NCBI RefSeq assembly: GCF_040938485.1
Contig: NW_027270897.1
Span: 1,116,001-1,180,000 of the forward strand
Length of the DNA stretch: 64,000 bases
DNA from: Diadema antillarum
Taxonomy: Eukaryota
Direction: 5' to 3'
The notes under the pieces are model-generated. The model was not told the origin of the DNA. It searched no databases and saw only the letters and a list, made by a program, of their open reading frames with translations. The position numbers and the translations under genes are program-made. Positions 24,330-47,600 of this stretch are shown in pieces (the stretch's first letter is position 1; every line of letters starts with the position of its first letter).

Positions 24330-25770
24330 ATGCTGCTCTCGTTCATTCGAATTCATTTTTAACATCTTTTGCAGTCAATTCGGCACACGTTCATCATAAT
24401 ATTATGCTGAGGGTCTTTCTTCATTTTTTTTGTCAACATACACGTAGTTATTGCATCAGTGCATTTCATATTTCCGTATTCATTTCAGAGATTTTGGCAA
24501 CAGTTTTTTTTTTTTCAGTGTGCTTATTGAGTCTCCCAGCACGAAGAAAGTACATGCGGCCATAACTTATTCCGAGTGTGTCGGCCAATTCAAGGTTATG
24601 ATCGTCAAATGTTCCTATAATTCTTTCTCTGTCTTCTTGAGATATACGTCTGGATCTAACTTGTGCTGTCTTAACTGTAAGAAGATGAAGTTAATCTGTA
24701 GTATTGGTACATGTAGACCTATATAATGAAAAAAGGGGGCGTTACAAAACAACAAACTCGAGGTATATGGGGGTCAAGAATATGACACTTTTACTGCTTA
24801 ACAGTGGGTGGATAAAACCAAAAGTCACATAGAAATACATGTTTAAATGTTCTCACCTTTTCAGAACAGAAATAACATGAAGTAAATTTGAATGAAAATG
24901 TTTGGAATTTCACTGTTTATTCGCGAAATTACTCAAATACCCTTTTCGGCGAGTAATGGCGAATTTGAATGAACGTAGAGTTCCAGCCAATTTGAATGCC
25001 CTTTTTACGAATTCGAAAGCCACATGTGCAAATTTCATTGATCGAAATGCTAAATTAAACGCACAAGTTGCAATTTTGAAAGCTAAACTGTACGATAACG
25101 AGGGGTTTTGAAGGAGCCTTCTGCCAAATGAACTGACAAAACTGCTAAATTGACCGGGGAAACTTATAGTTAAAAGTAGGCAAAATTGATGATTCTGACT
25201 GACAGTCAGACTCATTACTATATAGCCGTATATGTCCTATACGTGATATGCGCATAACAAAATATATAAGCATGTCAACCTGGCGAATGTACGCAAAAAC
25301 CATGCAACTCGTAAAGAAAGGCATTTTTCTACTCGTCGTTCAGAAGTATTGTTTTGCCTGGCACAGTCGTAGCACTATCTAACAGGTATCTGATAGAGCT
25401 AGGGTTGTCAACGAAGGTGTGGGTTTGATATACAACCAAAATGCATCATTTTGCTCTTTTGTTTCCTTTTCACGCTAGCCACAGAAGCGTGAAACAAAAG
25501 TGCATTACATAATGGTCTAAAACCCAATCCAAAACGCAGTTCATATGAAAAGTAGTGACTGAGAGAGCCCGTGACAGCATACCTAGTGTACGTGATATCG
25601 GATGATACGTGGTCATAATAGGAATCCTGTTCCTCTGAAAGCCATGTGAATGAGAAAGACTACGACAGCAATCACAATTGTGATACAGATGATTAGAAGA
25701 ACCCTAAGGTGGTAATTTATAGTCGTTTATACAAATAGGACTTTTACTCAGATTGTGTTTCTGTTGTACT

Positions 25771-26065
25771 TACTCTCTAAATAAAAATCGAGTGAAAATA
25801 TTCACTCTTAGAGGAGTGAATGCAAAAAAGAGTGAATTTAGAGTGAAATTGGAGTGAATTTTGAGTGAGAATGTTCATTTTCACTCAATTTAGAGTGACC
25901 TCAAGGATCACTCGAAGATTTTGGAGTGATTCCTTAGGTCACTCTAAAACAAGGGAAAATGAACATTTTCACTCAAAATTCACTCCAATTTCACTCTAAA
26001 TTCACTCTTTTTTGAATTCACTCCTTTAAGAGTGAATATTTTCACTCGAATTTTTTTATAGAGTA
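25771..26065. mobile_element. Foldback MITE built from GAGTGAA/TTCACTC repeats
   Basis: Near-complete palindrome TACTCT..TCGAGTGAAAATATTCACTCTT ... AAGAGTGAATATTTTCACTCGA..AGAGTA. Confidence 0.85.
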
Positions 26066-27919
26066 CAAATATAAATGACCAATTATCCATACGGCTACCT
26101 TGTGGATCACTGACCATCCTGCTGCTAGTTGACAGTCATTGCTTCTGCCATGCCAATACTCCTTATCAATGGGTTTATTTCTGCAGCATTTCGTTCAACT
26201 TCTTTTTTACTCTGCTAAATATTTGTGTATTACTGTCTGTTAACACCAGAGAGATGATACTAAAACCTCCCTGATCACACTTACGATCGAGACGGGCAGA
26301 TTTTGGCTTCGATGTAAAATGTCGAAGGAACTCGGGAACAGCCACAGTCTGCAAAGATACGTATTCTCACTATGCCGAAATAAGTCATTCGTGTGCCTCG
26401 ATCGTTGGTTGCTGCTCGCAGCTGCTGTCGAGAGATATCGGCTGTTTCCGCCAATTCTGGTGCAGACGGTACAAAAGATTTCTGCTAACTCTACTGGGCT
26501 ATCATGCACTTCCTCGGGAGAAGGACTGGTACCTCGAGCGAAGCTGTATATACATGAATGAACATTATACAGTATAGTAAAGCCAGAACAAACAAATGCT
26601 GCTTCATGTTCCGTGTCACGACGACGCCTATTGTGCATGCAATCACACTGCGTCTGAACTTCATGGTCGTTAAGAGAAAAGCCAATCTTTTATAGCCATG
26701 ACAGAATGAATGTAACCTATTCCCAATTATTAACCTTCATGAAATGGGTAGAATTCAAATGATTTCACATTGCATATAGGATTCATCGATACCCCAAGTC
26801 GACTCTAATATCTGCATTTCCAATGGTTTTAGTTAAAGACTTACTGACGTCATAAGATGAATAAGATGAATATGTGTCTGTACATTTTTTTATGTTTATG
26901 TTCATCATTGATAGGTTAATGGTCATTGGCTCACTCGTGTTGACTATGGCAGCTAGTACATACATTTGCCAGGCTGGTAACTAAAGGGGGAAAAGACTCG
27001 ATAGGGGGTTCGAATCCCCTCCCCTCATCCCAACCCCTAGACCAATGTATTACACTAGTCTTGAAATTTGCAACAAGATCTTTTCTGCATAAACTAAAGT
27101 CGCGGTCTTCGAAGAAAAACTACGGTTTTACCATTGACTCAAATATAGTATCTGTTTTGCTTTCTTAATCTACGACAATATGTTTTACCTGTCCATATGA
27201 AATAAAATATAAAAAAAAAAGTTATCCAGTTTCTGAATGTGATGTATTTTGTAAACCAACCACACACTGTAACCATGTATAGGCCTGTATGGCTTATCTC
27301 TTTATTAACTATTCTTTAAGGTCTTTATTATTGCTGTTGTTGCTGTTGTTGATTAATTCATTGGTACAGAAAGAGCTGAGAGCTCTGTTTAATCTGCTTT
27401 ATCTAAAGATTTAAAACATAACCTGTCCGGTAGTTTCCGTAGTTTGGTTTTGTTTGTTAGTCATTTGTTTGTTTGGAAACGCAAGGGGATTGAATACAAG
27501 ATCCACCAAAATCAGAATTAGGCGGTGACCAGGTCTTTCAATCTTTGATGAAAAAAAAATGCCATAGGAGCAGGTCCTCAGATAACCTTCTCAAACTAAT
27601 CTGGGGGTGTTTCATCAACGTTTGTCAGCGTTGACGAGCTTCATCGCTGACGATTTGGTTAGCGATGACGTTACGTCAGCGATAACCAAACTGACGTGAA
27701 AAACCGTTTCACGAAGCCTCTGACAAATCGTCAGTGTATATTTATTTTTCAATCGAGTTGGACGAGGCTTCTGACGAATTAGGCCACGCCCACCATATCG
27801 AGGCGCCAGAAAAATGATTGAAAAAAAATATCTTTCACACTCTCGCGTATCTCGTCCCGTCACCGGTGATTACTTCCATCCTTACTCAAGTATCTGCAGA
27901 CGACCATAACATTTAAAGA

Positions 27920-30900
27920 ATGAGTGAGCTGGATGAGTTATCTGTAAGTATATCTTCTAAAACTGAATTATCATTGGCTTGCCTGGAGATGTAGTAGTTT
28001 GAAATGAAATCCATTGATAGATCCTAGAAGACTAGATTCGTAGATGGCGTCGTTAGATTTCTATCTTAAGACTTTAGTCCCACTCATTCATAAAGACGTT
28101 TTGTAGTATGGAAGTGTATCATACCTCCTCCTCTGGCCTCTAGCAGCGAGCAGGCATCTAAAAATCTGGTACAGTGGTAGGTAAGGACATAATAGGCTCC
28201 ATTTACACCATTACTGCGTGTCCGTACTAACTACGGCGGGCGTATTGCGTATTTATCATAATCGTAAATTCAGCCAAACCGTGTGGTGTTCATCGGTAAA
28301 TTTAGGTAAGCTGCGTGCTAAGGAAGCACCTTCCACAGCACACTAATTACTCGTCTGCTCGTTAGTGATGCTGTGCCGTGAATGCGGCCCCACACACCAA
28401 ACGGCGTTTACGCGAGATTGATAATTGATACAGCGGTTAGGCCTATTTCCAAAGCATAGCATCTGTCGATCGTCCTCCCTTCCTCCCTTTTTTGCTTTTT
28501 GGTCTTCAACTTTTTGATATTCTCGGAAGGACTCCCTAGCCTCTAGCATCAGTTACTAGGCTTATAATTGCTAACATTTGTTGTCCCGGACGTGGATGTC
28601 CCTCGACTAATTTAAGTGCCAATTCAAACATATAAGATTAGAAATACAACCCTGGCTATATTAATAGCTAGTAGGCCTACCTACATACTAGTACATTGCT
28701 ACATTTAACATTAATATTAGTACCCTAAACCCTAACTACACACAGCCCAGTCGCTGTACATAGCTTTCGCACAGCGTACTGCGTACAGTAGTACTAGCTA
28801 GGTAGGTAAACCCTAACCCTATTAAACCCTCGCAATACGACATAGTATACGTAACGTTAGGACCTACCCTTGCCTGCTTGTTAACGCATGGGTGCAGGCG
28901 CACTGCGGTGGAGCCCATTTTACGATTTTGCGTAGGTAAGGTGTAAATTGTAATTATTGATAAACAAACCACGTATTGACAAAATCTGTGTCTTAAAAGA
29001 CCCTTGGGCCTTGCACAAAGCCGTCTCTTTTTCCCCGATGCAAATTGTATTGTACATGTAATTTGTATTAAGAACCAAACATGCATTTTCAATGCAAAGC
29101 GGGGGAGCAACCATGGCTTCCATGCCATGCAGCACTTCACACACAAATGAATGGCAAATCATAACTGCATTGACTTTCTCTGTTGTTGAAATGAAATCAT
29201 TACTGTTTCATTGAAATGTTGTATTTGTGAATGATAAAGTATTCGCATTTTCTACTAAGGGTAGTTATTTTGTTTATTTTTTGTTGACTTTCATTCGTTT
29301 TCCATTGCCTATGCGCAGTGTCCTGCACGTTATGTACTCGTACGGTAATCGGATGTCTGCCTACATAGACGTACTACTCAGTAGATACTAGTACTACTAA
29401 AGTTTAAAGTCGTGCCTAATTTCAAAAGCTGGTTAATACAGGGTGTCCAACCCAAAACGAAAATGAATGCTTTGTCAAAACCAAATGCATGAAATTATAG
29501 AGAATTTTCATACGAGTCGAACGACACAAGAAATAAAATTGTCTAATTTGGTTGATTACTTTTCTTTTTAATCTAGACTATCTAGTTACTAGCATGCAGC
29601 ACTCCTACACTTTTTTCTGTACCGGTAATGGAGGAATTTTTCTTGACAACATCCCAAATTTGGCTCAAAATGTTTCTGTTTTGAAATGTGCTTCTGCCAA
29701 TTGCAAATTACAGTTAAATGAGTCTAAAATTTACAGAATACCTGGTTAAATGGGTAGTTAGAATCAAAACTTATTATGAAATGCATGTGCTTGTTGAGAA
29801 AAACAAAACTGTTTGCACCTGTATGCAGTTCAACACTGACAACACAGTGTCTTACACACATGCACTATTCAAGATGTCCCTCAATTTTCCAACAGTTAGT
29901 GTATGTGGTCCTTTCTAAGACCACATATGTAGTAGGTGTGATGAGCATGGCTAGATTTTAGAGAGATGTTTTTGTTGATCATGACATTAATTTTTTTATT
30001 AAAATTGATTTATCTTATCAAAGGCTAAGGCCTTCCAAAAGTACATGTATGCAAAGAGACTACCCAACAATTTCAGGTCAACTTTCAACAAAATTCCTAT
30101 AAGCATCGTGCATTGCAATGTGTGGAATTGATCTTTGTTAGTCTTCAAAGGCAGTGGCTTTTGTTCGATGCTGCCATTTGGAAAATTTGAATAACAAATT
30201 AATGGTCGAACCGTCTTTTCAAAAATATTTGTAGAGTGTAGTATTCAAACCTGCTACGTATGTTTTCATTTACAGTAAGCTATACTGATCACAGACATAC
30301 AACACATGTTAAATTGTATGACCCAGATTGCATCTTGACAGCTGAAACAGTCACCTAAATTTCTCCCTATGATAAACTATTTTTTTTAGTCAAAATTAGT
30401 ATTTGAATGATAAAAGTACTAAATTTCTGTTTGGTAAATGTCTTGTGACATTGTACCCAAAAATGTGAAATTAAAGAATCAAAATATGTTTACATTATTT
30501 ACGAATTTAACAAATTTGTTCCCCTGGTAATACACTATCTACATGTAGAATTTCTCAGCATTGATACAGCATTGTAGGTATGGACGCTCATTAACACCTC
30601 AATGAAATTAACTGCTTTTTTTTAAGATCTAGTACAAAATTCATAAAAAACTAGAAAAGCACTCTGAGAGCGCAGACTTCCGCCAAGCATCAGGCCATTT
30701 CCACCTGCACTGATCTTGTTTGCGATCATCAGTGATTTCCACCCATACGTACTGCATTGTGTGCTGAAAGCCGCCTGATTTCCCAATATACATGTAGAAG
30801 CCTTTGTTACGTCATAACCCCTCAGCTGCACAGTGCGCCTCGCCCTAGCAGAAAATAGAGGACGCACTTTAGTGCGCGCGGACAAACAAACCAACGGTAA

Positions 30901-33900
30901 CGAAAACATAACCTCCCACCTTGGCGGAGGTAATAAATCTGCTGAATCTTATTTAGTGTCAGCTACATCTAGGTGAAATCATGCTAAGTTATATCAATAT
31001 ATAGTTTACTAGATAAAAAATGTATTGAAAACCAGCACTATTAGTATTGTCTTTGACAGCTGTCTCTTGATAACTGAGTTGTTTATTACTGTGCCTGTAA
31101 AATTGTAGTTCAATTTTTACACTAAAAGATGTTAATTCAGCCTTTTGCTTTATTCAGATGATGTAGAAACAAGTTTATCGTATTTATTTCATTTTGTTTT
31201 GACGCAGGAAACTGATAAAGTACATGGACGGTATCAGCCTGGAGAAATACAACTCCTGTGCAAATATGTCAGGGAAAACTACCAACAGTTACACCCAAAG
31301 ACTGACAAGCCGAATGTAAGTAATTTACGTAAACATACATCTTGAAGTCAATCAAAAGCGTACTGTAGTCTACAAGTTATCAAAGAAATTGTAGAAATGA
31401 GAGACCAAAAGAAATTATGATTTTAAATGGATGTAAGCAGTAGGGACGCTGGCTCGCAATGTGATTCTCTGCAAAATAATAACTTAGCCTAAAAAACGTA
31501 GACGAATTGTATCCTCGTAAAATGATATTGTCCATGTTTACGATAACTTTTAAAAATAAACAAACCCTTCATAACAGCATTCTCGATGCATTTTTGGGCT
31601 CGAGAGTCATAAGGGAGAGGGGGAATGGGGACACCCATATAAAGAAGCGCTCCAGCGTCACCTCCGTTGTGATTAGCTGCACATCACACCACAGTGCTGA
31701 GTGATACTCTATCCAGAGTTTTTCAGCATATTCATCCAGATTCAGATCCAGATGTACATAACACACAGATTGGATAAGAAAAAGGTATTTTTATTTGACT
31801 GCGCGCAGAGCACACCCTAAAATTGACATATTACGATTCTTTTAGCAATGTTTTTTTGTTGTGTTAAATTTGATGTATTTAAAATTATTTGATAGTTTTC
31901 TTTGAATATTTTGGTATTATAAATTTGTTTATATATATATTTTGGATGTCCAAAAATATTTAGATTAAAAAATTGAAGGGTGGGGAGGGGGGGGGGGGGG
32001 AAAGATACCTCCCCCAAACAAAAGTTTGATGGGGGGGACATGTCATTGAGTATTTTTCTTTCTAGCGATGATTTTGTTGAACATTATTTTCTTGATTTAT
32101 TTCATCACAGCTCTGAAACGGAGACCACCCAACAATTGAAGGCGTACAGTGTAAATACTCAATCGTGAGTGCTACACGCCATTAAAACCAAAACAGCACC
32201 AACAACTAGTCAACTTTCAACAAAAACCCTTATCAAGCATCGTTCCTTGTGATGCATGGCATTAATCCTTGTTAGTCTCCCAAGGCAGTGGCTTTTGCTC
32301 CGATGCTGGCAGTCAGGAAATTGAAATAAGAAATTAACGCTCAGACTGTTTTTACAAAAATATCTGTGGATTGAAAACCACTCAACCAAATTTGACAATC
32401 TTGGTGTCACTCTTCTCCTTGATAATTCCCCTATAACTTAATGTCATTCATTTTGGAATCAGAGTAATGCAAATATGCCCAAATTATCGAAAAACTTGGG
32501 CTCTGGGCCATGCTGTATACACACACATATATTGTCGGAGGGGGGGGGGGGGGGGGGGAGGCCTCGTATCTGCAATTTTGGTGAAAATGACTTTTTTAAA
32601 AATAATGTCAAATAATGGGATAAGTGATGTCAAGTCCAAATCCCAGGTGTCCAACTTAAAAAATGAAGCCACCACAGTATGGTACAGTAAAGGCTTTCCC
32701 ATTCGCTATAGTGCTTTGGCCGCCATATTTTTTTGGCTCTCCTGAACATTTGACATTTTGCAGAATACAAGGTCTTCTCGCCCCAGCGGCGATATGTGTG
32801 TGTGTATATGTGTGAATGTAATATTGTTTATTATATTATGAATACTTACAATAATTGTTACTGTTCTAATTCAGACTAAAGCCAGACTGGCACATGCCTG
32901 GAGACAAGCAGCTATCTCCCTAATGAGCCAGGGGTTTCCCCTTTCGAAAAATAAAAAAAAGGAAGATGGCCCACACCTGCGTGATCTATGGCATCAAATG
33001 GTTTCTAGGGCCAAAAAGTACAGGGACCAGAGGAGACAGACAGGTGAGAATGATATACATTGTAAGTTGTACTTCTAAAATTGTATGGAATAGTGGATAG
33101 GCTTAAGAGAGATCCCACTCCACAAAGAAGGGTGCTAATATGTGACTTTTATCAATTTATCACAAGAATCAAGAATTGTTACATTGTTGATTTTTATAGA
33201 TAACTGTTATTGGAATTTAGAAAAATTGTGAAAAGATATAAAGCAGCTCATCTCTTCTGTTGATGTGAACAAAACCCTCAATGACAATTTTAATACCTGG
33301 AGTAAAACAGTAAGATATTTGAAATTTCAAATAGAAAATTGATTTAATTCAAAGTATATTCATAATACCTTAATAATAGTATGTGTTTCATGTAATTATA
33401 TCGCTACATCGAGATATATGTATTTTTAAAGTAAATCTTGATTAAAGAACTGTTGTAGGAATTCACAAGTGGAGGCTGATGTACAAATATAACTTATGAA
33501 AAATGATTAAAATAAAATGGATAGACAACCATGAAATACTGATTGAAAATACAGTATCTCAATCGTATTGGTTTCTGTAGGCGGAGGACCTCGACCAAAG
33601 TTTCATGAAAGACATGAAATGGTACTTGAAACTATTCCCAGCCAATGCCAGACAGGTTTCATTGGTATTGAAGCCGAGGCTGGTGACATTATTGCCTTGG
33701 TGAGCATATATATATTTTTTAATGTATGAATTTCCCGTTATTTGCAGATAAATACGATGAAGTTGTATAATGAAATAATTCTTTTAAAAAAATCACCTTT
33801 CTTAATTCCTCTTCAAGATAGATTATAGGTATTTAATTTTGTTGATTTTTTCCCGCTTTGATTCTTCTCTAAGAATTTATGATATTACTGTACTCAAATT

Positions 33901-35184
33901 TTTGAAACATTGAACTTTTTTTCATTTGAGGGTGGGATTTGGTTGTTTATAAATAGTTTCATTTATGTGCTATTCAATATAACAAGGGATAATTTCACTT
34001 TCTTAAATTGATTAAAAAATGAATAACAAGAAATTTCCCTCGAAATGATGAACTTATGATTACACGTAGAAAATTACATTCGAAAGTTCCCATTTCTACT
34101 TTTACATATTTATTGAACATTTTTAAGTAAATTTTTAAATGAGGAAGTTGAAGTTGTTCTTCAAATTTCTATTATTTTTCTTGTAAAAAAATTGTTGCTT
34201 TTAAAAATGTTGCATTAATCAATAAATGAAATAAAATGAAATGGAAGTACAACTGGCGAAGCACCGCATGGCTGCTACTTCATGGACTTGCTAGTGACTT
34301 GGTTCTGAGTCATGAGTCATATTTTCAGAGCCTGAGTCAGAGTCAAATTTAAAAAAAAAAATGGATTCCAGTCAGAGTCACAAAAAACTGGACTCGAGTT
34401 GAAGTCCTTACTCAAGTCACACAGCACTGTTCATTATTTCTCCTCTGATTTAGATCCTCTGTAAATTGTTCTGCAAAGGAATTCCTTCCTATTATATTTT
34501 GGTTAATTACATTCATGACCTTAGTTCCTCTGTAAAAGAAGATTAATTTCTGTGTATGAATGAGATCAATTAAATATGTAACAATTTACTAAATATGAAT
34601 TGCAATTACAGTTGGGTGGAATCGATGGAACACAGGAGCTGCCTACACAACAAGACCGACATTACAGGCATGAACAACAGGAACAGCAACATGGATATCA
34701 ACCACAGCATCAACCACAGCAGCAACACCTGCCACAACAGCCTCAACCACAGCCTCAACCACAGCAGGACCAACAACCACAGCAGCCTCAACCACAGCAT
34801 CAACCACAGCAGGACCACCAACAACAGCAGCCTCAACCAGAGCATCAACCACAGCAGGACCACCAACTACAGCAGCAGCATCAACCACAGCATCAAGCAC
34901 AGCAGCACTACCAACCACAGCAGCTTCACCAACCACAGCAGCAGCATCACCAGCCACAGCAGCAGCATCATAGGCATGTCAGTCCTAACAAGGGAAGAAA
35001 AAGGCAAGGAGAATCACAGGCGCAATTGGATCTTATCGAGATTGAGAGAGAAAAGCTGGAAATTAAGAGGCAGAAGCTTGAGGTGGAAAGAGAACAGTTG
35101 GAGGTGGAAAGAGAACAGTTGAAGGTCATGAAGGAGATGCTTGCAGAAATGCAAAACGGATTAATCTTCAAAAGTGAATTGTAG
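27920..35184 (+). CDS. Harbinger-associated Myb/SANT-like DNA-binding protein (NAIF1/MSANTD-type), 5 exons, 330 aa
   Basis: Exons 27920-27943, 31208-31315, 32875-33043, 33581-33699 and 34612-35184; all GT-AG with matching phases, 993 nt, no internal stop. Protein: MSELDELS-ETDKVHGRYQPGEIQLLCKYVRENYQQLHPKTDKPN-TKARLAHAWRQAAISL..HLRDLWHQMVSRAKKYRDQRRQT-GGGPRPKFHERHEMVLETIP.., then a Q/P/H-rich tract and a C-terminal coiled coil. Exon 1 is the least certain. Confidence 0.85.
30650..30933. mobile_element. Short Helentron/DINE-1-like non-autonomous element in Myb intron 1
   Basis: ACTAG terminus; subterminal inverted repeat TCCGCCAAG / CTTGGCGGA; partial inverted repeat AACCTCCCACCTTGGCGGAGGT. 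Confidence 0.65.
34670..34972 (+). repeat. Coding minisatellite (CAACCACAG/CAGCAG units) encoding QPQHQPQQ repeats
   Basis: Direct read within the last Myb exon. Confidence 0.9.
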
Positions 35185-36486
35185 TTTTCTTTCATAAATA
35201 CTTTGATACTTGAATTGGTTCTTCCAAAAATGGCTATATTCCTACAATAGCAGTGCATTATTTGAAATAATACCATCCAAACAGTTTCACTTTATATGAA
35301 AATTGCTGTAAAAGGAACTTTTGAATTCAACTATTTAGAGATGATTTTATTATTTATCACATTTACATCAGTGATGTTATCAAGAAATTTCAAGAAACTG
35401 TATGTTTCACATGTGAGGGACTGTTTCTATAAGAATAATACAAATGTAAAACAAAGAGGAACAAAGAAGTAGACAGTTGTCATGATCTGATTGTACATTA
35501 ACAATGAGGACTTTCACAATCGAGGATCACAGTCATATATGTTCACTTCCATTAATGTGTAACACTAACACCTATTAACAAAAGTGGTTTCATGAAGAAG
35601 ATAATGCTTAATATGTACAGACTACCCGTTAAAATATGGCTATTCTACATTCATGTTATATTCTGTCTTCTTCAAATCGTTTGGAGCACCCTGTTTTCTG
35701 TTTGTATATGATACAGAGAAAGCAAAAAAAAAAAAAAAAGTTCTAAGAATTGTAAATATATTAACTGACTCATTTTGACCAGTCTTCTTTAAATGTTCTG
35801 GAACAGTTTTGTCACTGTCAGTCATATTACAGAAGTAACCCCTTGTTAAATTCAATGAAACATTGAAGTTACCAAAGCCCTGCTATAATGTGTATAGATG
35901 CTTTTCTGTTCTTATTTGTAATTATTATGGAAATTTTTACAATCCCAATTTAATAGGATTTCTAAATGAAGCAAGTATGACTCATGTATAAATAGACAAG
36001 TCGTGCGCATGCATTCTGAACATGCTGAAGCTTCGTTCTGTGAGTCTGGAAAGCCAAACAGTAACTCAGTACAATAATCAAGCCTACTGCTAATGAATGC
36101 ATGAAAAAAGGGTTTCTGCACTTTCACGGCTCAAGTATCTACAAATTGATGCAGGTGATAACTAATGTATACAAAAATTAGACTTACATGTATTTAATAC
36201 ATGTATATGATTCTCCATGTTTATACTTCAGAGAATCCAAATCTATACAACCAATTTTTCTGAGGGATACTTTCTTAGATTTCTCATGTGGCTTGACTGA
36301 CTTGAGTTCACACAGAACAGAGAAATGATCATAAAGTAAAGGATCTGGACACGGTCAGCCCAAAATGATATTGTGTAACTTGCGAGTTCCAACCAAATCT
36401 ACACTGCCTCCATGTAAAGGAGTAGTGAAATGCACATGCTTAATACACCAGACAAGGCAAGTGCTGTAATGTAAACATAAACGTAC

Positions 36487-36880
36487 ACTAGAAATTGTGC
36501 CATCAAACTTGATATTGGGCCTTAAACATTTATTGACCCCTGCCTGTGACCTTTGACCTTGTGTAGACCATAACCTCCCAAAGGGACACTGTCCATCCAA
36601 GTGTGGTCACAAACGGACCTATAGATCAAAAGTTATGAGCAATAATAGAAATGTGCCACAGAAACTTAACATTGACCCCTGATTTTGACCTTTGACCTTA
36701 AGGTGACCTCCCCTAAATTTCGTAAAATGTGAAACATTGCAAAACCACTCTTCCCTCCAAGTTTGATTCAAATTGTAGCGCAGAGTACAGAGTTCAAATT
36801 TTTGTAGTGTTACGGACGGACGACTAACGAACGGATGACAGAGTTGATCCCTTTATAGTCTCCCATCATCTCCAGTGGGT
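36487..36880. mobile_element. Degenerate Helentron/DINE-1-like element between the convergent Harbinger genes
   Basis: ACTAGAAAT terminus, TGACCTTTGACC motifs and an (ACGG)n-like block. Confidence 0.55.
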
Positions 36881-37107
36881 TCAAAACAAAAGACTCCAAG
36901 AGATCTGAAAATGGCCTAGATTCAATATTGTCAATGTGAACATGAATATTGAAATCAGTGTTAAATATAGCAGGTATGTTGCATTATGAAGTCTTGTATG
37001 AACTCATGACATTATTTTCATCCATTTCAAACTGTTGCTTCCAAAGAACTAAAGATGTGTTAAGCAGATAACTTCTAAATGGCATTAATAATCATAATGT
37101 GAAGTAT

Positions 37108-37690
37108 ATACTGGGTGGCCCAGAATTAATGTTACATAAATACACCTTAATAACAAAGGAATGAATGACTGAATGAAATTATTGTTTGAAGCATTTGATT
37201 AAAGAGCACTTCGAGTTTTGTTTGTAACCAAAAACATCCATTTTCACAAAGGCATATTGATTTCATGACCACTTAACTAAAAATTAGGGATTAAAGACGT
37301 TACTCATTTGGTTTGACAAATCATTCTTGACTGAGAAATAGCAGTTCATTCAAATTAGAGTTGCCTGTAATAACCTTAATAAAATGAAGACAGAGACTTA
37401 CACCACTTAATGCACTTTTTTCGTCACATACTTAATGGGTTTACAAACAGTGATAGGCAGTCTTTGTGTTCGTTTTCTGTAAGCCAGCATGATCATTTAT
37501 GTTGAGATTTAAAGTAATGAATTGCTATTGCTCAATCAAGAATGAATTCGCAGGCTAAATAAGTAAATTTGTTAAATCCCTAGTTGTTAGTAATCTTGTC
37601 ATGTAATCAAAATGCCTTTGTGAAAATGGATGTTTTTGATGGCAAATGAAACTTGAATTGTTCTTCTATCAAATGCTAAAAATTCAATAA
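37108..37690. mobile_element. Tc1/mariner-like MITE remnant
   Basis: TATACTGGGTGGCCC terminus; inverted pair CAAAAACATCCATTTTCACAAAGGCAT (about 37229) / ATGCCTTTGTGAAAATGGATGTTTTTG (about 37612). Confidence 0.5.
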
Positions 37691-37732
37691 CATGTATTTT
37701 ATTCAGTCCTTCATTTCACAGCAGCGTGTAAT

Positions 37733-40700
37733 CTAGGCAAAATAGTCATTAATCAAGTCGTCTCTGACTTGTCGTCCTGACACGGCGTCAGCCCCTTCCT
37801 CATGCTCCTCGGCCTCTTCCTGAAACAGAGCTTGTGGCACTTCGACTTCAGGTTGGTTGAGTCGCTTGCTTATGTTGTGCAGACAGGCGCATGCTGTAAT
37901 CACATCACTGGCCCGCTCTGGCAACATGTGAAGGCCTGACCCTAGGAGACAGCGAAACTTACACTTTAACTGTCCATTCACCTGTTCGATGACAACCCGG
38001 GTGCAGCTGTGTGCTCTGTAAAGAGTGGAAGTTATTACATCAAGAAGTAAAGCTTTGTCTTTGTGTAAAATTGTATTTCTTAAAAACAGAAGACTTGCAC
38101 TTTTTAATTAACTCTTTATTTGTCATGGTGGAAACCCCCTGTGCGCCACATTATTTTGAGACATGAAGTTAGTCATGCTTTGAGAAAGATTTCTGTATTT
38201 CCAACCTTTATAACTTCTACGAATTTCTGGTAAGCTGGACATAATATTGAGCAAAGTTGAAGAGGAATGCCAAGCTTAGCTTTGATATAAATTGTATGAC
38301 AAATCTATTTCTATTTATTGTTTTTATGACCAGAGTGTAAAAGCATGGCTTTTGCACATAAAACTGTGAGAGAAACTAAGAATTTACATGCAAATTTAGT
38401 CGGGAACAACACTTGATAGTCAATCACCACATAGAATGCAAACTGTATGTAAAAGGAACAAAAGCTCGAGAAAAGCTTTCATTGTACCATTGGATTAGGC
38501 GGTTTTTAGATTGGTTCAAGCGAAATAGTGCGTTTGAACAGAATATGCGAAGTTGGCATGCCGTCCAACTGGTGGGACGTGCGATCATGGCACGTAAAGA
38601 GTTAATTCAGTGAAAGAGATTAGTACGTACTGGTTGTATCTTCTTTCAGCTTGTGTGGCAGGCAGGAGTTTCGGGGTCATTAGCCAAGGCTTGAGTCCAT
38701 ATCCCGAGTCCCCAAGCATCAGTCCATTCAGAAGTCCAGCCTCAAAGCCACGGCCAACTGCACTGGTCTATCAAAAAAGGAGGATATTTTTATTGTGTTT
38801 CATTATCTCTAATTATACCCCATTATATTCATATGATTAAAGATATTCTTTATTGAAATTTTTGTAGTACATGTATTATCATAAAATACGAGCAATTGTT
38901 AATGGAGGATATTCAAGATTCGCATTATTCTCATGCTTTTTTTGCAAATCAAGCTTGTTTTTATGCCTCCGCCCTGAAATGTCGCCGGAGGCATTATGTT
39001 CTCGGGTTGTCTGTCCGTTCATCCGTCTGTTTGTCCGTCCTTCTGTCCGTAATTCTATTTTTTGGGCAGCATATCTAAAAAACTTTTAGAGGTATCCTAA
39101 TGAAACTTGGCATGTATATGTATGAGTGGGCGTAGTTGTGCCTATCAACTTTTTGGTGCACATGCGACAGGTCAAAGGTCAAAAGGTCAAGGTCAAATGC
39201 TCAAAATTTCACTATTTCCCCTATATCTATGCAATGTCTGGATGTATTTTCTTGAAACTTGGTGTATACATGAACTATCAAATAAAGATTCCCCAGAGAG
39301 AGCTTTTGGGTCATGAGATTAAAGATCAATGGTCAAAGGTCAAGTGAAAATGTTAAAATTTCACTTTTTTCTCCATGATCTCACAAATATTTCAAGGTAT
39401 CTCCATGGAACCTATGCATGTTCTGACTGGCAGTGATCATGTAGGGGAATTAGGGGTCGTGGGTGGAAGATCAGGGGGTGAAAGGTCAAGATGAACTCAT
39501 CCAAATGTCATTATTTCTTTCTTATCTATGCAATTCTTGCAGGATTTTTTCTTGAAACTTAGTGTATGCATATATTACCCAATACAGATTCTCTTCAAGT
39601 TTCCTGCCTAATGGTCAAAGGTCAAAATGTCAAATATCAATTTAAAGTGTTAAATTTCAATTTTTCATTAAAGTTGTAAAAGGATCAAAAGTTGGGTACA
39701 GAAATCCTCAAATCCCCAAATACCTGCACTCTTAGACAGTATAGACATTCATCTAAATAAACCATGTTCAAGGATTGTGAACACTCAATGCATTTGTGAC
39801 AAACCTGTCATTTTGATATTTTGCCAGTCATATGACACACATTGTCAAGACATTGTGCTATAGTCCTACATGTATTCGGAGAACCATGCATTATAGAGGA
39901 GGCATACCAGTCGCCATAGGGACATTTCTAGTTTGTTATATTTCTGATTGTATGAATTCCTTAGAAAGAATGGATAAACCCTATAAAGGCTCAGAAAAAT
40001 AAGGAATTTGATGACAATTTCCCTTTAACATTTTCTAAAATGAGAACCAATATAGAATTTAAGTGTTGTGCATACATTCAATTATCAATTCTTGTGCAAT
40101 GTCCAGACTTTAGTTCTGTTGATGGATTAAGTTTCAAAAATATAAGGATAATAATTCAAGGAAAGAAATTTTAGTGTGCATTTCTTACTCTTAGAATTCG
40201 ACTATCGTGAGTGCTTCCGGGCCATCTTGCTGACACGCTTGTTATTTGGTATTTAGCATTGCACGTAAGCTGCACGTTAATGCTGTAAAACCCCTTGCGG
40301 TTTACGTAGAGATGTTCTACATCACCAAGAGCCACACCGTTGATCTGGACATGGGTTCCATCAATGGCTGCCACAACCTTGGGGAATTGGGCCAAACGGA
40401 AGAAATCAAGCTGTGTCTGTTGAACATCTTGGGGAGAATGAGGGAATTTGATGAACTGTGGAAAAAGAAAATATAATTATTGAATTGATTAAAGTTTTTA
40501 TATACATTTCCATAGTAATGCTCAAGGCCAGTAATTAGTGTGAAGGGAAGGATCAGTAGTTGCTCAATTTGAAAAAAAAAGATTCAATATCACAGTTTAT
40601 ATTTCCACTGATGTTATGATCATTGATTTTAGAAATGTTGGGCCACTTTATTTTGTCGACAAGTTATGATAAAGGTGAAAAACAATGTTTTACATCTTCA

Positions 40701-42096
40701 ATTGTTTCTTCCACTGTGAGATATTTAATGAAAACGTAAGTGACGGTTCAGCAATGTTTTTGTTCATTTGGCAGCATGCTAGTCTATATGATTTCTCTGT
40801 CTTTTTTTTTTATTTCCTCACTTAAATCTCACTTAAGTACTTTAATTTCTACAGTGCCCTCTAAACAACTACTGAGCCTCCCCTTCAAAGCTATTTACAT
40901 GAATTCATCTGTACTTGCTTTTCATGTGTTTAAAACAATGTGAATCCATAAGTACCAAGTGGAATATGACATTAACTATTGATTGACCAAAAGTGTAATT
41001 GCCATGTATATGATAATGCATGAAATGTACAAATGTTTGGTACTAAGAAATCAAAGAATCGAATAGAGTAGATACATATTAAAGCTTCTCAACATTAAAT
41101 CATCAGAGTATGTTCCATGAATGGATAGAATGTCAGAGACGAATTGATATTTATAAGTGCAGGAAATGACCGTTAACGTAGAGCTGTGATTGGCTGTCAA
41201 GATAAGCAAAAAGTTCCCAGCAGCATGCTTATAACAGCATACTAAATTCGTAGACCCTATTCTGTGCCGCTTGCATCGTTTTTGTAATCAACAGCTTGGA
41301 AAGTATTCAATTCAATCCATTGAGTTAAATGTACATATGTTATAGCATAATTCAGATTAAAGATTTTGCAATTCAGATATTTTTCATCCGAAACTAATAT
41401 ATGCATATGTATATATATGTTTACGTATAATTTATAAAAGTCTATTGACAACTGAAATTTCTATACTACAATGTTATTTATTTCTTGATGAAAATGTTTG
41501 CGTTGACTGCAGAATTTCAGTTTTTATTGATGTTTACAGTATGTGGTATTTTAAGCAATAAATTTCAAATCTTAACATGATACTATGCTATTGCAGTTAT
41601 TTTGTATTTGTCTTGATTTAAAGCAGAAAGACAGTTTTGGGGTATGTGAAAACATTTTAAAAGCTTTTTTGGCATAAATTACAGTATTTGATCATGATTA
41701 TGTAGAAAACTCATCCAGTACTAAGAGTTTTCTCCAAACTGACCTCTTGTATCTTTTATAAAGCTAATATATTTTAATTACTTTTCACTTTGTTCGAGGG
41801 CCTCCGAACAAATCTGTACACTGTGTCAGCTATACTTCACAAGGGGTAGTTAATGATTACTCATCTTCAGTTCAAAGCTTGGAAATTGTTCAGAAATATT
41901 TTGGATAGTGTTTTATGAAATATAGAAGAATTCTTTTATTTTAGAAAAAGAAATACGTCTTCACAAAACTATCTTTGTGATTTAAGTTGGCCATAATTGT
42001 TATTACTAGGCCTATTCTTTTTTATTATTTTAATTTTTTTTTTTGGTAAAACATTGCGGGAGGGTTTTTGAAATTAGTTTCGCATGTGTATTGTGT

Positions 42097-42129
<33 letters not shown>

Positions 42130-44324
42130 TTAGTGTGTGTGTGCACGAGGCTGCGTGTATGTGCTGGTGCATTTATACTTACCACATACTAGTAATTTCT
42201 GACAAAATTAAGACCCACAATCTTTTGAACAATTTATTTCTTTGATTTCTTTGTGATTAGAATGCTTTAGTTTATATTTTCTTACAAATCTGTCTTATAG
42301 GTCCACTATTCATTTATGATTACACTAATAATTACCCTATTGATTTTCTAGTATTAAAAGCAATATTGATTGTAATAATCATAACAGTAATAACAATAAT
42401 TATTGTTGATGTTTTCAATACTTTTTAATGCCATCTAGTTATTTTTTTTTTTTGGGGGGGGGGGGGGGTGAGGGGGTGGTAAATTAATTAAGGAGGTGTC
42501 AGTGCCACCGTTCATAAGTAAAAAGAAGGGCTAGTTCACAAAAGTTGTGTTTGCTCGGGCATCAATCACATAGCTTTTTTTGGGGGGGGGGGGGGGGAGG
42601 GGGGAAGAGTTGTCCTGGGTGAGACTGATTTCAAGTACAGTTTTTTTCTCCGTTGAAGTTTGAACATTTCCCTTGTATCATAATACTTGAGATATCGTAA
42701 AAAATGAAATGTAAATGAAACAACAAAGTAAAATAAAAGAAAAATAATGTACTATACTTGAAATGCTGCCAGCTTACGGCCGACAATGGCAATGAACAAC
42801 GAGATACTACTGTATCCAAAAAAAAAAAAAAAAAAAAAACCGACAACATTGCATTGCAATCGCAATGTGAGAATGCATTCGGCGCGGCCTGAGACCCCAA
42901 GTCGGTGGAACTTCATTAACATTCCATTTCCTTCAGACTTCGACAGTAAGTTATAGTTTAAACTTCATAGCTTCTCTGGCCTCTTTCTGAAAATTTATAC
43001 GAAGCTAAGGTAGAAATCAATACATTAGAATATTAAAAATGTCGAACTGTATTAAACCAGTAAAATTTAAACGCGATCGCTATGTGTGTACAGTGGCACC
43101 CAACACTCGTGGGTAGGTATGGGACTAAAGAAATTGCATAATACGCTGCGTACCTGACTCTTCATGTGCCGTGGCGTGGTAGAAACCCCCTTTGTGCCAC
43201 ATTTTTCGGAGACATTATGTCACTTCTTTAGATATCTGTTGAGCTGGGGCAACTAGTGAGTAAAGTTGTAACTGTTAGAGAAAATGGCAAGCTTTGCTTT
43301 GATGCATTATTGTACGTTGTATGCCAAATCTATGGTGGTTTTTCCTTCACATGAGTCTGACCAGTGCCAGTGGCAGTGGCAGTGCAGTATACATCTATAG
43401 GCTTAGCTACTATAAAGTGTACAATAATGTACATTAATTGCTGCAAAGGCATGAGTTTTGCAAACTTTACAGTGACAGAAACTAGCACCTCTTCATAGTC
43501 GTTCTCCACATGAAATGCAAGCTATTATATGAGAGGAACGGTAGCGCGAGTAACCCTTTCTTTTCTACCGCGGCATTAAATTGGAGATTCATTTATTATT
43601 TATCGACAGCCGCTAGCCGGTATCAGTTGGGAGCATTATCCTTCTTATAAATGTGTTTTTTTTTTTCTTTACGTTCAAACAAACAGAAAATTAAAGATTG
43701 GTATCTCGGTGCAACCTAAAATAAAGTTTAAATTGAATGTTTTGTAAGTGTTGATTTTTAAACCAATCATTCCATAACTTGAGTTTAAAACTAATGAATG
43801 ATCAAAGTTATTTCACTGTCAGTACAGTGAGTGAGAGGTAAACTGTGAGTGTGAAAATATGTAAGTTAAGTTACATCATATTCATAGTCTCAAGTCTAGT
43901 TCACTCTAACAGGCTTAGAATCAATGTGTAATAGTTTGAAGGATGATTGTTAAGAGTAACTTACTTGGTCCTTCTTTGCACAGATGGCTTTTGTCACTTT
44001 TCGTACGATGCGCGAACATGTTGGGATGCTGCAGCCATGCAAACTGGCAGGATCATCAAGCACACTGCCAGTTGCGAAGAAGTGGAGGGCAATACATACT
44101 TGAAGTGCAGCTGGCACAGCATGGCTTCTTTTGGTTTGTGGCTGCAGACTCTCTTCCAGTACATCTATAATGTAACCAACTCCTTCTCTGGTGAAGCGAT
44201 ACTTTTTAAGCATTTCGGTGTCGTCATAGATATCAAAGGGGTTTGTGCGATCTCTAAAGATGCGCTCTCTGCGCATCGCAGCTTCTGCAAGAGCATTGAT
44301 GAGTGCAGCCATTTTGGTTGTCAA
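37733..44324 (-). CDS. PIF/Harbinger DDE transposase (HARBI1-like nuclease, DDE_Tnp_4), 4 exons, 348 aa
   Basis: Exons 44324-43965, 40455-40189, 38767-38631 and 38015-37733; GT-AG, phases 0/0/2, 1047 nt, no stop. Catalytic motifs AIDGTHV, LGDSGY and RVVIEQVNGQLKCKFRCL are present, as are the family motifs YRFTR, LHFFATG, NRKGFYSINVQ, WPGSTHDS and ACACLHN. Confidence 0.95.
38962..39932. mobile_element. Helentron/DINE-1-like element in transposase intron 2
   Basis: TATGCCTCCGCC..CGGAGGCAT start, (TCCG/TCTG)n block, central repeats with AGGTCA clusters, GAGGCATA subterminal repeat, hairpin and CTAGTT end; same family as 52125-53407. Confidence 0.8.
42100..42143. repeat. (GT)n microsatellite
   Basis: Direct read. 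Confidence 0.9.
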
Positions 44325-44627
44325 GGCTCAGGGACAATTATTTCGTCAGTGAAAATCATCTTCGTCGATAGGTTTTACCCATCGACGAATTTATTGAAAA
44401 TTCGTCGATGACTTCAAGATATTCGTAGCTGGTTTTCATCGACGAATTTTCATGAAATGCAAATTCGTCGAAGAAAGTAAAATCGTAGGTGAAAACGTCG
44501 TTCGTCGATGAAAACCTTCGACGAACTCGTTGATGAAACGCCCCCCTGATGACTATTAGACGCCCAATCAGTGACCAGGCAATTCCTTTATTTGTATATC
44601 CGTGTGTGTTTGTTTCTACTGCTCCAG

Positions 44628-47600
44628 CAGGCAACCCTGTTCCAATCAGTCATACACTTGGGCCCCCACCGCCAGGCTACCTGGCCGCAGAGCCCTTACC
44701 CGGACCAGTGCTACCCCCGCACCATCCTGCCTTAGTCCCACCCATTCACGAGGGACAGCCCCTGCCCCTCACGGCTCCATCTTCCATGCTTGGACCCCCG
44801 CTGATCAGCCAGGAAATGCCACCTGCGGCTGATGAAAGGTGAGCTGCCTTATCCTCGCTTTGCAGAAGTGCCACAAGTAGACACTTGCGGATGTGGAAGG
44901 AAAATGTAACAAGGTCTTGTTCCAGTCCACAACTTAAGTCAATATTGACTCTGGAAAGCTGGAAGGTCATAACTCTGTACAGCAAAGCATGCTACTCGTA
45001 CATATATATATAAAATGTGACATATAGCCCTTGGCTTGCTTGCTACACAACACACTTGTGGTAAAGCAATGTAGCATGGAGGAAAATGAAGATTGATAAT
45101 GGCATGATATGATTACCTCAAGGTTAGGCGGTGGAAAAGAAACTTAATTGTTCCATAAATTCCTTCTGTTGAGTGACAAAAAGCATCTTTCCTGTTGATA
45201 GAAATCAAAATCTTTGTTGACATTCCTTCATTATGGCATTGCAATTAAGGGACGTGACATAAAAGTGGAGCCTTGTGCATGTTGAATTTTGTTGCACTGG
45301 GATCAGGAAGTTAATGCCAATTCCCTATGTTGTGATGGACAAGAGTGGTTCTGTAAAAAAAAAAAAAAAAAAGATGTGGTGTTTTATTTTTTGCAGTATA
45401 GAGTAAAATTTGTAAATCTGAAATTTGAACTGACCAATGAAATGTTTAAGTTGACTAAAAGTTATGTGTAGTAATACCGGTCACAGACTGCTTCGTCCGT
45501 GTAACTTGACTTTAACTTTGCAGAAGCAGTCTAACAAACTTTAAATGTATCATTGAGTGTTGGCTTTAGCATGAAATGGCGTCAGAACTCATTGGCTGTC
45601 CAATCCTCCGTCACATTTTTCGTCTGGCAGTGCAATCGGGACCCAGCGTCCCCCCATCGTTCCGCCCCCTCCCGACATCCAGCCAATCATCGACAAGCTG
45701 GCCAAGTACGTGGCCAAGAACGGGGAGGAGTTTGAGGCCAGCGTGCGGGACAAGCACGACCCCCGCTTTGAGTTCCTGGTGCCCTGGCACAACTACAACG
45801 CCTACTACCTCGCCAAGAAGGACATGTTTCTTCAGGAGTTTCGCCAGCGGGAGGAGGGAGCAGATGCGGCTGACGCTGAGAACAGGAATGCTGCTGAAAA
45901 GCAGAAGAAAGGTTGGGGGAAAATCTGCTCAGTTACATCACAGTAGAATTATCACATTTTCCTCCTTACTGTACTTCGTACTTCATTCCCCATACAAAGT
46001 GTGATAGCAAATATATGACCTCGCTACAAATTCATTTCAGTTCACCACTTTTGGTCCATATGATGTTTTATCATTTTCTTTTTTTTTGTGTTGTAATTTT
46101 TGTGATAAATAGTGAATGCGAGGAGCAGCATGTGATTTCAATAATCAGAATGCACAGTCTGGATACATGCTGCGTGCATGAGTCATGAAGACACTGAAGC
46201 TGCATACTGTTGTATACATAGTTATTAGTTGTTGGCTTGTAAGTGATACTGTAAATGTATGACTGCACTGGAAAATTCATATTGAAGTAAATTGATATTT
46301 GTTGTTGGGAATGCACAGAATATTCTGACCTCATGGGATTTGAAATGCTATTTTAGGGAGGTTAAGAATCCCCTGACTTTATCTAGAGACCTATAACATC
46401 CCTCAGTATCATTCAAACACTCAAGATGGAACATTCTAGACATTTCTCTCTGTGCCAGTTCTCATCTGCATCATGTGGCTGACTTTATTTCTCCCCAGTG
46501 CCTGTGAGGTTTCCCATTAAGCCAAAGAGAGCAGAGGAGCGGACCCTAGAGAGACGGAGCGCCCTTCCACTGGAGAGCAGCAGTGACTCCGAGGAAGAGG
46601 GCGAAGGGGATGAATCTACCTCAGGAAGCCATCGACGCACCACAGCCCGTGCAGGGGACTTTCCAGCAGGGGCACAGCGGGGATTCCCCCCTGAGATGCA
46701 GAGGGGATTTCCCCCTGAGCTGCAGAGGGGATTTCCCCCCAGGCAACAAATGGACTGGCCCATGGAGGAGGGCAGGGTGGGGGGAGGTGGGGAGGGGAGA
46801 GAATGGACTGCCATGGGGCAGGAGGGGGGCATGGATCCGTCGTACATCAGGGCCATGGAGGCTCAGGGGAGACTCGGCGTCCAGCAATTCATGGGGGAAG
46901 AGGACGCCACACAAAGCAGACGGTGCGGCAGTGCTTACAGCGAGGATCAGGGAAACGGCAGTGAGGGCAGATTTGCAGATGACGGCAGGGAATCTACAAG
47001 GACTGCTGGTAAGTCTTCCTCGACGTTACATCTTCCTCACTGCAAAAATGTCACTCATTCTGCGTGGTCTCATGAGGAATGTGATTATTTTTAGGGAAAC
47101 TGCTTGTGTCATGTTAAGGATGATAGTTTCCATATCCACGATATCTTAAAAATACACATTAGTTTTTACCCAAATTTAAGTGAAATCTGTGGTTGAAATT
47201 GTATTAATGTTTAAAATGTAAAGTGTAGTTTGATGGAGACAGAATGGTGACATGATCGAGAGTGCCCAACTGAATTCTTTGTTGTATCTGCTACGAAATG
47301 GCCCGGGGTTCCAATGCCAGTTTCTTAAACTTGCAGTGACATGTGGCTTGTAACACTGTATCATGGTGTATATTATATGCCCATATGTAAATGGTGCAAG
47401 ACTGTCTAATCCAAGTGTATTTAATGGTTGTAACTTCGCAATGATGGAGTGATCTCATCCTTGTCGTTGCCACTCATTCTGGTCCGTGGTCCTTGCCAAA
47501 TTTTTATGCCAACATTTTTCTATAAAACCTCAAGATTCAATAAGACGGCGCAAACTTTTGCAGTGCACTGAATCAATCGTGGAAATCCTTCCTCTCTTCC

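Follow-up and report, generated by a model that had tools for sequence, protein, structure and literature searches.

The DNA analysed here is a 64-kb stretch of the genome of the sea urchin Diadema antillarum (the window, G000:C9:1116001-1180000 of the 1.75-Gb, 2963-contig assembly that was also the genome searched), and it harbours a PIF/Harbinger-type DNA transposon that measures 16,942 bp from one terminal inverted repeat (TIR) to the other (window 27604-44545). An earlier note, made from the letters of the window alone, had described a complete, giant Harbinger element with both TIRs, CTG on both flanks, an intact four-exon DDE transposase gene and an intact convergent five-exon Myb/SANT gene, and all of these components are present at the locus as described. 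The pattern GGGGYGTTTCATCAACG has exactly two matches in the 64-kb window, at 27604-27620 on the plus strand and at 44528-44544 on the minus strand, against a chance expectation of 0.03, and comparison with six other copies gives a family TIR of 18 nt, GGGGG[T/C]GTTTCATCAACG, from which the left end of the window copy differs by one G fewer. Next to the tips lie two different arrays of short motifs: CTGACG, found five times in 170 bp at the left end, occurs once in the 16.3-kb interior, and TTCGTCGA, found seven times in alternating orientation in 200 bp at the right end, is absent from that interior. Such subterminal arrays would be of the type expected for a Myb-like end-binding protein. Most of the length is intron (11,817 bp, 70%), with 2,028 bp (12%) of coding sequence, 2,548 bp (15%) between the two stop codons and leaders of 316 and 233 bp. 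No runs of N were met in the sequence examined, and a Pfam scan of eight further open reading frames (ORFs) in the introns and between the genes detected no cargo domain. Repeats are nested in the body (Table 1), including a further high-copy segment at ~38000-38600 and a foldback ~500 bp long, and a genome search with the whole element was dominated by one of them.

The transposase gene occupies the minus strand and comprises four exons with a joint coding length of 1035 nt, encoding 344 amino acids with no internal stop. Its introns (3509, 1421 and 615 bp) are all of the GT-AG type, with the donors GTAAGT, GTAAGA and GTACGT and with a polypyrimidine tract followed by AG at every acceptor. 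The Pfam profile DDE_Tnp_4 is matched at positions 1-60 by exon 2 and at positions 111-158 by exon 4, a full HMMER scan with exon 1 as query retrieved 2456 relatives, and the four exons are collinear with full-length homologues of 351-376 amino acids. The catalytic triad, D (AIDGTH), D (LGDSGY) and E (IEQVNGQLK), is in place and aligned with that of the homologues.

The second gene lies on the plus strand, convergent to the transposase gene, with five exons that total 993 nt and encode 330 amino acids. Its introns measure 3264, 1559, 537 and 912 bp, so that the seven introns of the element, which the earlier note had put at up to 3.5 kb, range from 537 to 3509 bp and are all GT-AG. The translation is identical to a RefSeq model (P0151, XP_071479157.1) listed by NCBI for Diadema antillarum, and the alignment of its relatives runs unbroken across the junctions of exons 2/3, 3/4 and 4/5. 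The prediction that the element would easily be mistaken for host genes is borne out, as NCBI labels this gene an 'uncharacterized protein' (XP_071479157.1, XP_071481191.1, XP_071483355.1, XP_071483365.1) on five contigs. We regard the protein as Myb/SANT-like on several lines of evidence that are individually weak but agreeing. A relative from Diadema setosum (P0154, 61% identical) matches Myb_DNA-bind_5 with an E-value of 2e-5 (24.9 bits vs a cut-off of 21.7), exon 3 matches Myb_DNA-bind_4 with an E-value of 0.023, and those of the nearest ESM Atlas clusters that bear a name are Myb/SANT-like. In the AF2 (AlphaFold) model, residues 19-99 form a three-helix domain (pLDDT 70-80), and the remainder comprises a Q-rich stretch that is disordered and a C-terminal helix of 60 residues. 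The best solved match of the N-terminal domain is the DNA-binding domain of the trihelix protein GT-1 (Z 7.4, root-mean-square deviation 2.7 A over 76 residues), and Zeste was also matched (Z 6.5), while a profile search of the alignment of the Myb-like proteins against solved structures returned nothing meaningful.

Table 1. Features of the element, given as window positions, and the seven empty target sites reconstructed from its copies (L, left flank; R, right flank; own, window copy)
Feature	Position	Strand	Remarks
Left 3-bp target-site duplication, CTG	27601..27603	.	By empty-site comparison, belongs to an insertion whose right flank is on contig C1439
Left TIR, GGGGTGTTTCATCAACG	27604..27620	+	One G shorter than the family form
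Left subterminal region with 5' leader of Myb gene	27604..27919	+	CTGACG/CGTCAG five times in the outermost 170 bp
Myb/SANT-like exon 1, ATG and 8 codons	27920..27943	+	Donor GTAAGT
Myb/SANT-like exon 2, first part of Myb-like domain	31208..31315	+	
Myb/SANT-like exon 3, remainder of Myb-like domain	32875..33043	+	Alternative donor 18 nt downstream gives a 336-amino-acid isoform (P0152)
Myb/SANT-like exon 4, conserved TGGGPRP... block	33581..33699	+	
Myb/SANT-like exon 5, disordered Q-rich stretch, long helix at the C-terminus, stop codon	34612..35184	+	
Region between convergent stop codons, presumed 3' untranslated regions	35185..37732	.	Foldback/MITE-like inverted repeat 37185-37682; high-copy repeat ~36400-36800
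Transposase exon 4, catalytic E in ...RVVIEQVNGQLK..., stop TAG	37733..38015	-	DDE_Tnp_4, E 9.2e-8
Transposase exon 3, second catalytic D in LGDSGY	38631..38767	-	
Nested unrelated 1-kb repeat in transposase intron 2	38954..39949	.	Copies elsewhere in the genome 85-88% identical
Transposase exon 2, first catalytic D in AIDGTH	40189..40455	-	DDE_Tnp_4, E 1.8e-12
Transposase exon 1, N-terminal region	43965..44312	-	2456 relatives at E<=0.001
Right subterminal region with 5' leader of transposase gene	44313..44545	-	Seven TTCGTCGA/TCGACGAA motifs within 200 bp of the tip
Right TIR, GGGGGCGTTTCATCAACG read inward	44528..44545	-	
Right 3-bp target-site duplication, CTG	44546..44548	.	Belongs to an insertion whose left flank was assembled at C9:5453646
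Insertion L(own) + R(C1439)	Empty on C397 and C9:1115.5k		...aaactaat CTG aatgaattt...
Insertion L(C9:5.45M) + R(own)	Empty at C9:3602962		
Insertion L(C1439) + R(C9:5.47M)			Inside a high-copy repeat
Insertion L + R of the C26 copy, mutual			Inside another high-copy repeat
Insertion L(C9:0.19M) + R(C54:0.87M)	Empty on C1407		
Insertion L(C54:0.89M) + R(C54:2.50M)			Inside a ~40-copy family, nearly all identical
Insertion L(C54:2.51M) + R(C9:0.21M)	Empty on C762		

Copies, empty sites and miniature relatives

A genome search with the two ends of the element gave eight left and seven right ends at ~100% identity, and these delimit seven full-length copies of 16,897-16,941 nt, three on C9, two on C54 and one each on C1439 and C26. 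Any two copies differ by 6-16 substitutions (~0.07% divergence, ~99.93% identity), and of 32 positions that vary, 30 do so in a single copy only, the star-like pattern of a burst. None of the 32 substitutions falls in the 2028 nt of exons (chance ~0.017), and both genes are intact in six copies, the seventh (copy C) having a 1-bp deletion in exon 2 of the Myb-like gene. Heterozygosity between the two haplotypes is 2.52% (PMC13511894), so a divergence of ~0.07% places the burst far later than the average age of allelic differences. The nested repeats are common to all seven copies and were therefore already aboard before the burst. The earlier note would have counted family members of the same size and structure against its reading; the same-size copies in this genome support it instead.

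To reconstruct the insertion sites, the 400-bp flanks were used one by one as genome queries, and positions at which a left and a right flank match next to each other were sought. Every flank has exactly one partner, always with a gap of 5 nt between the flank windows, and this constant gap corresponds to a single 3-bp target at each of seven empty sites (Table 1). For each of the four loci whose flanks are unique, the genome contains a single other counterpart, which is empty and 93-99.9% identical to the flanks (C397, C9:3602962, C1407 and C762). Since the assembly keeps both haplotypes (PMC13511894), the absence of the element from the counterpart at four of four such loci makes these insertions look hemizygous and very recent. 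The suggestion of a potentially competent element in the earlier note is strengthened by the seven nearly identical copies in different flanks, by the seven empty sites and by this absence from the other haplotype.

The eighth left end (G000:C44:2205913 onward) shares its junction with the copy at C54:889714. Compared with the window, it lacks 119 bp (the equivalent of 28123-28242) and its similarity ends at the equivalent of 42581; it could be the other allele, a damaged copy or a mis-join. Allelism of the C54 and C44 copies on the strength of their shared left flank was considered and rejected, as that flank (G000:C54:889715-890114) belongs to a repeat family found at ~40 places, nearly all of them 100% identical over 800 bp, which represents a second, unrelated and very young mobile element.

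The same ends are also found on a miniature inverted-repeat transposable element (MITE) of 174 bp (e.g. G000:C2021:36229-36419), for which a first look gave 1147 candidates. The 40 copies that were scored are 98-100% identical, indicating very recent amplification. A second, older MITE family of 143-173 bp resembles the left end of the element. Pieces of the element from 33000-38999, introns included, were further detected in runs labelled 'organism B' (e.g. X5), with 0 differences over 115-216 bp each, which would mean either a very close relative, a mislabelled sample or very recent sharing between species.

Exchange of flanks in the assembly

Re-pairing the flanks by their empty sites shows that in six of the seven full-length copies the assembled flanks come from two different insertions, only one copy keeping its own two, and that the swaps form two three-way cycles. 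The window copy is one of the six: its left flank belongs to one insertion and its right flank to another, the contig switching copies inside the element. The flanking CTG triplets of the earlier note are therefore real, although they come from two different sites, and its complete 16.9-kb transposon stands as a structure, although the window copy need not be one physical insertion. The assembly corresponds in size and contig count to the published hifiasm v0.4 / RefSeq assembly, which has short HiFi reads at low coverage with both haplotypes kept (PMC13511894; bioRxiv 10.64898/2026.05.24.727502), the mean read length being 6.8 kb at ~11x (PMC13511894). With reads of this length, and with private variants only every ~4 kb in each copy, mis-threading by the assembler is much the simplest explanation of the swaps, whereas genuine recombination would have had to occur several times in a very brief period. 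In C9, C54 and C1439 the locus probably changes inside each of the copies, and these places would be mis-joins of the reference.

The contig switch also explains the apparent start of an SFSWAP-like gene (window 44549-54389) at the right end of the element. At the corresponding empty site (L018, G000:C9:3600000-3607000) more open proline-rich sequence lies upstream, while the downstream side has a SURP-like exon at L018 positions 4110-4346, and a splice-acceptor-like site ~90 bp beyond the element suggests that the insertion was into an intron. The right flank 44549-48090 is duplicated on the same contig (L017, G000:C9:3927000-3934000), inverted and 100% identical over 3542 bp; this copy breaks off at the very base that follows the CTG, and unrelated sequence adjoins it there without a CTG, probably by another assembly join. 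To the left of the element, window 24722-27475 is a repeated unit that ends at 27475, with a paralogue 28 kb upstream on the same contig (G000:C9:1112500-1116000; 93-99% identical) and three copies on C397 (373000-378000), one of them 99.9% identical, and this looks like a tandem segmental duplication together with its other haplotype.

Classification, target site and proposed mechanism

The element has the features of the PIF/Harbinger-ISL2EU-Spy (PHIS) superfamily, namely a DDE_Tnp_4 transposase with its D, D and E, a Myb/SANT-like second gene, TIRs with a 3-bp target duplication, and Tourist-like MITEs with common ends. Within PHIS, the definition of the NuwaI group by Han et al. (2015, Mob DNA 6:12, PMC4482050) comprises a CWG duplication, a TIR starting with GGG, a transposase of the DDE_Tnp_4 type and a second ORF of the Myb/SANT type, and the sea-urchin element has both the CWG duplication, confirmed by the empty sites, and a TIR beginning with GGG. 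It is thus an unusually long member of a described group of CWG-target elements from animal hosts, rather than a TWA-type Harbinger, a placement made by these features. The TIR of 18 bp lies in the group range of 12-61, the transposase of 344 amino acids compares with 341-346 in several of the catalogued families, as far as part of the catalogue shows, and the second ORF is likewise of the Myb_DNA-bind_5 type. In contrast, the element is 16.9 kb long and ~70% intron, whereas autonomous NuwaI elements average 4,462 bp and part of the group's Table S5 lists lengths of 1,154-8,497 bp (PMC4482050); in that part of the table the partner proteins have 153-280 amino acids, against 330 here, and the 16 host species named for the group include no echinoderm (PMC4482050). 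A literature search for large intron-rich Harbingers found none.

The member of the group on which the proposed mechanism rests experimentally is the zebrafish HARBINGER3_DR, which appears in part of the same catalogue as NuwaI-2_DRer with a 343-amino-acid transposase and a 221-amino-acid Myb_DNA-bind_5 partner (PMC4482050). Reconstructed Harbinger3_DR has been mobilised in human cells with both proteins required, the Myb-like protein binding the ends, interacting with the transposase and bringing it into the nucleus (PMC2836001). Compared by description, the two systems share a CWG target, a DDE_Tnp_4 transposase of 343 vs 344 amino acids and a Myb-like partner, but Harbinger3_DR is 4.2 kb long, was rebuilt from dead copies and has the shorter partner, whereas in the sea urchin the family has four times that length and its copies occur intact in nature. 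The Tourist MITE system of rice (Ping/Pong and mPing) offers another likeness, in which a two-gene autonomous element is accompanied by a very young, high-copy MITE that shares only its ends, with a 3-bp duplication that has W in the middle and a palindromic target; it differs in its TWA target, its length of ~5 kb and its plant host. Harbinger-Snek and related sea-urchin Harbingers (PMC8437027), again likened by description, also have echinoid hosts, genes for a transposase and for a Myb-like protein, short non-autonomous derivatives and evidence of recent mobility in marine animals.

The target duplication is CTG or CAG at all seven full-length loci and at 42 independent MITE insertions, and the empty sites whose letters were read have CTG. 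At the 42 MITE insertions the half-site before CWG shows the preference A(0.55) G/C A(0.57) C(0.58), which makes the target a loose palindrome; the extended target of Harbinger3_DR is reportedly similar. After re-pairing, the two CWG copies are identical at six full-length loci and discordant at one of the seven, where a left CTG and a right CAG stand against CTG at the empty target (C762:554527-554551). Among MITEs, the middle base is discordant in 4 of 30 young insertions and in 7 of 12 of the older 143-173-bp family, six of these being CTG...CAG. The discordance of young insertions overall, roughly one in eight, exceeds the ~1-4% that random mutation predicts at such ages. A rate of about one half, suggested by 3 of 7 full copies together with the 7 of 12 older MITEs, was rejected for the full copies, where the apparent 3 of 7 was produced by mis-threaded contigs and falls to 1 of 7 when flanks are re-paired by their empty sites. 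Discordance could arise if the excised element carried 3-nt 5' flaps from the donor site and these were sometimes ligated at the target, a seamless chemistry like that of piggyBac. An excision model for mPing proposes 5' overhangs, which would fit such a carry-over, and the same study found the donor base at only 1 of 46 new insertions (PMC4561436).

By analogy with Harbinger3_DR and Ping/Pong, both genes would be transcribed from promoters in the terminal regions and then spliced. The Myb/SANT-like (trihelix) protein would bind the subterminal arrays (TTCGTCGA seven times on the right, CTGACG five times on the left) and recruit the 344-amino-acid DDE transposase, which itself appears to be without a strong DNA-binding domain. 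The transposase may then cut at the 18-bp TIRs and integrate the element into a loosely palindromic (A-S-A-C)CWG(G-T-S-T) target with a 3-nt stagger, which would duplicate the CWG. Movement of the 174-bp MITE, whose ends are those of the element, presumably depends on the same two proteins.

Autonomy and meaning of the family

Our data suggest that the window stretch is very probably one copy of a very young, autonomous-looking PIF/Harbinger NuwaI family in Diadema antillarum, and that the whole 16.9-kb body, with its ends, two convergent spliced genes, seven introns and nested repeats, in all likelihood transposes as a unit. Several points weigh against this reading. The transposase was searched exon by exon; exons of the two genes were joined only locally, for counting stops and for comparing the Myb-like model with P0151. 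The match of the whole of P0151 to Myb_DNA-bind_5 (E 0.017) lies under the Pfam threshold, and a structural Z of 7.4 falls in the range that the search tool calls common. Contigs from four runs of unknown kind contained no splice joints over 33000-38999. Reads with a mean of 6.8 kb do not span 16.9 kb, for none of the assembled copies, the window's included, is a single physical molecule proven, and private variants may have been shuffled among copies or may partly be consensus errors. The copies could also have been silenced recently.

The last of these points belongs to a broader alternative, that the element is structurally intact but not self-sufficient, either as the burst is over and its copies are silenced or as a related family supplied the proteins. 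The lack of transcript junctions in the contigs of the four runs would fit this, and a possible supplier exists in the same genome in the form of a sister family whose Myb-like partner (P0153) is 64% identical. C225 and C810 also carry left ends related at 89% identity, and there are MITEs whose ends differ slightly. Against this alternative, the coding exons carry none of the 32 substitutions and are uninterrupted in the copies, the 1-bp deletion of copy C apart, and the NCBI pipeline, which uses RNA-seq, gave the same 330-amino-acid model and a second isoform. Contigs from three small runs of unknown kind also lie on exon 5 of the Myb-like gene and the 3' end of the transposase gene and not on the neighbouring intron, although this is a hint only, and we consider loss of self-sufficiency unlikely. 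The freedom of the exons from substitution and the two intact frames would equally be expected of a host gene pair co-domesticated like HARBI1/NAIF1 that had kept its ends. A domesticated pair is expected to occur as one fixed copy, in conserved synteny between species, and to have lost functional ends, whereas this element occurs in several copies at sites unrelated to each other, shows fresh duplications of 3 bp as well as empty alleles, has a star-like phylogeny at 0.07% divergence and is matched by a high-copy MITE, so that domestication is barely conceivable.

The state of the assembly raises the further question of whether the assembler fused two elements, one with only the Myb-like gene and one with only the transposase gene, or made the copies out of a single locus. 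Low coverage, short HiFi reads and the retention of both haplotypes (PMC13511894; bioRxiv 10.64898/2026.05.24.727502) would favour such an artefact, and flanks have demonstrably been swapped among copies. The same internal order was nevertheless assembled seven times with private variants in each, the interior is mostly unique with mapped nested repeats of at most 1 kb, well under the read length, and the seven left and seven right junctions are all different, each with exactly one empty-site partner. Of the words sampled from 33000-38999, where the two genes are connected, 76-94% are also present in DNA runs of other individuals, and an artefact of this kind is very improbable. Returning to a young family that moves as a unit, its activity at the present day in the germline of Diadema antillarum, with the discordant CWG as a possible footprint of the donor flap, seems doubtful.

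These findings leave the classification of transposons unchanged, and the element is not a new kind. Its size, twice that of the longest NuwaI element in the part of Table S5 compared here and ~4 times the group average, bears on the cargo limit of PIF/Harbinger transposases, and the 0.17-kb MITE and the 16.9-kb element form a natural pair for testing the effect of size on transposition. The family also damages the D. antillarum reference assembly, in which six of the seven copies are places where a contig passes between loci; such mis-threading splits genes, for example the SFSWAP-like gene beside the window copy, and transposon genes are left annotated as 'uncharacterized protein'. The hemizygous-looking insertions may serve as presence/absence markers in a species of conservation concern and as a sign of ongoing transposon activity. 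If the family were indeed active now, it would be the largest naturally mobile PIF/Harbinger known, and would represent a two-protein system able to move ~17 kb.

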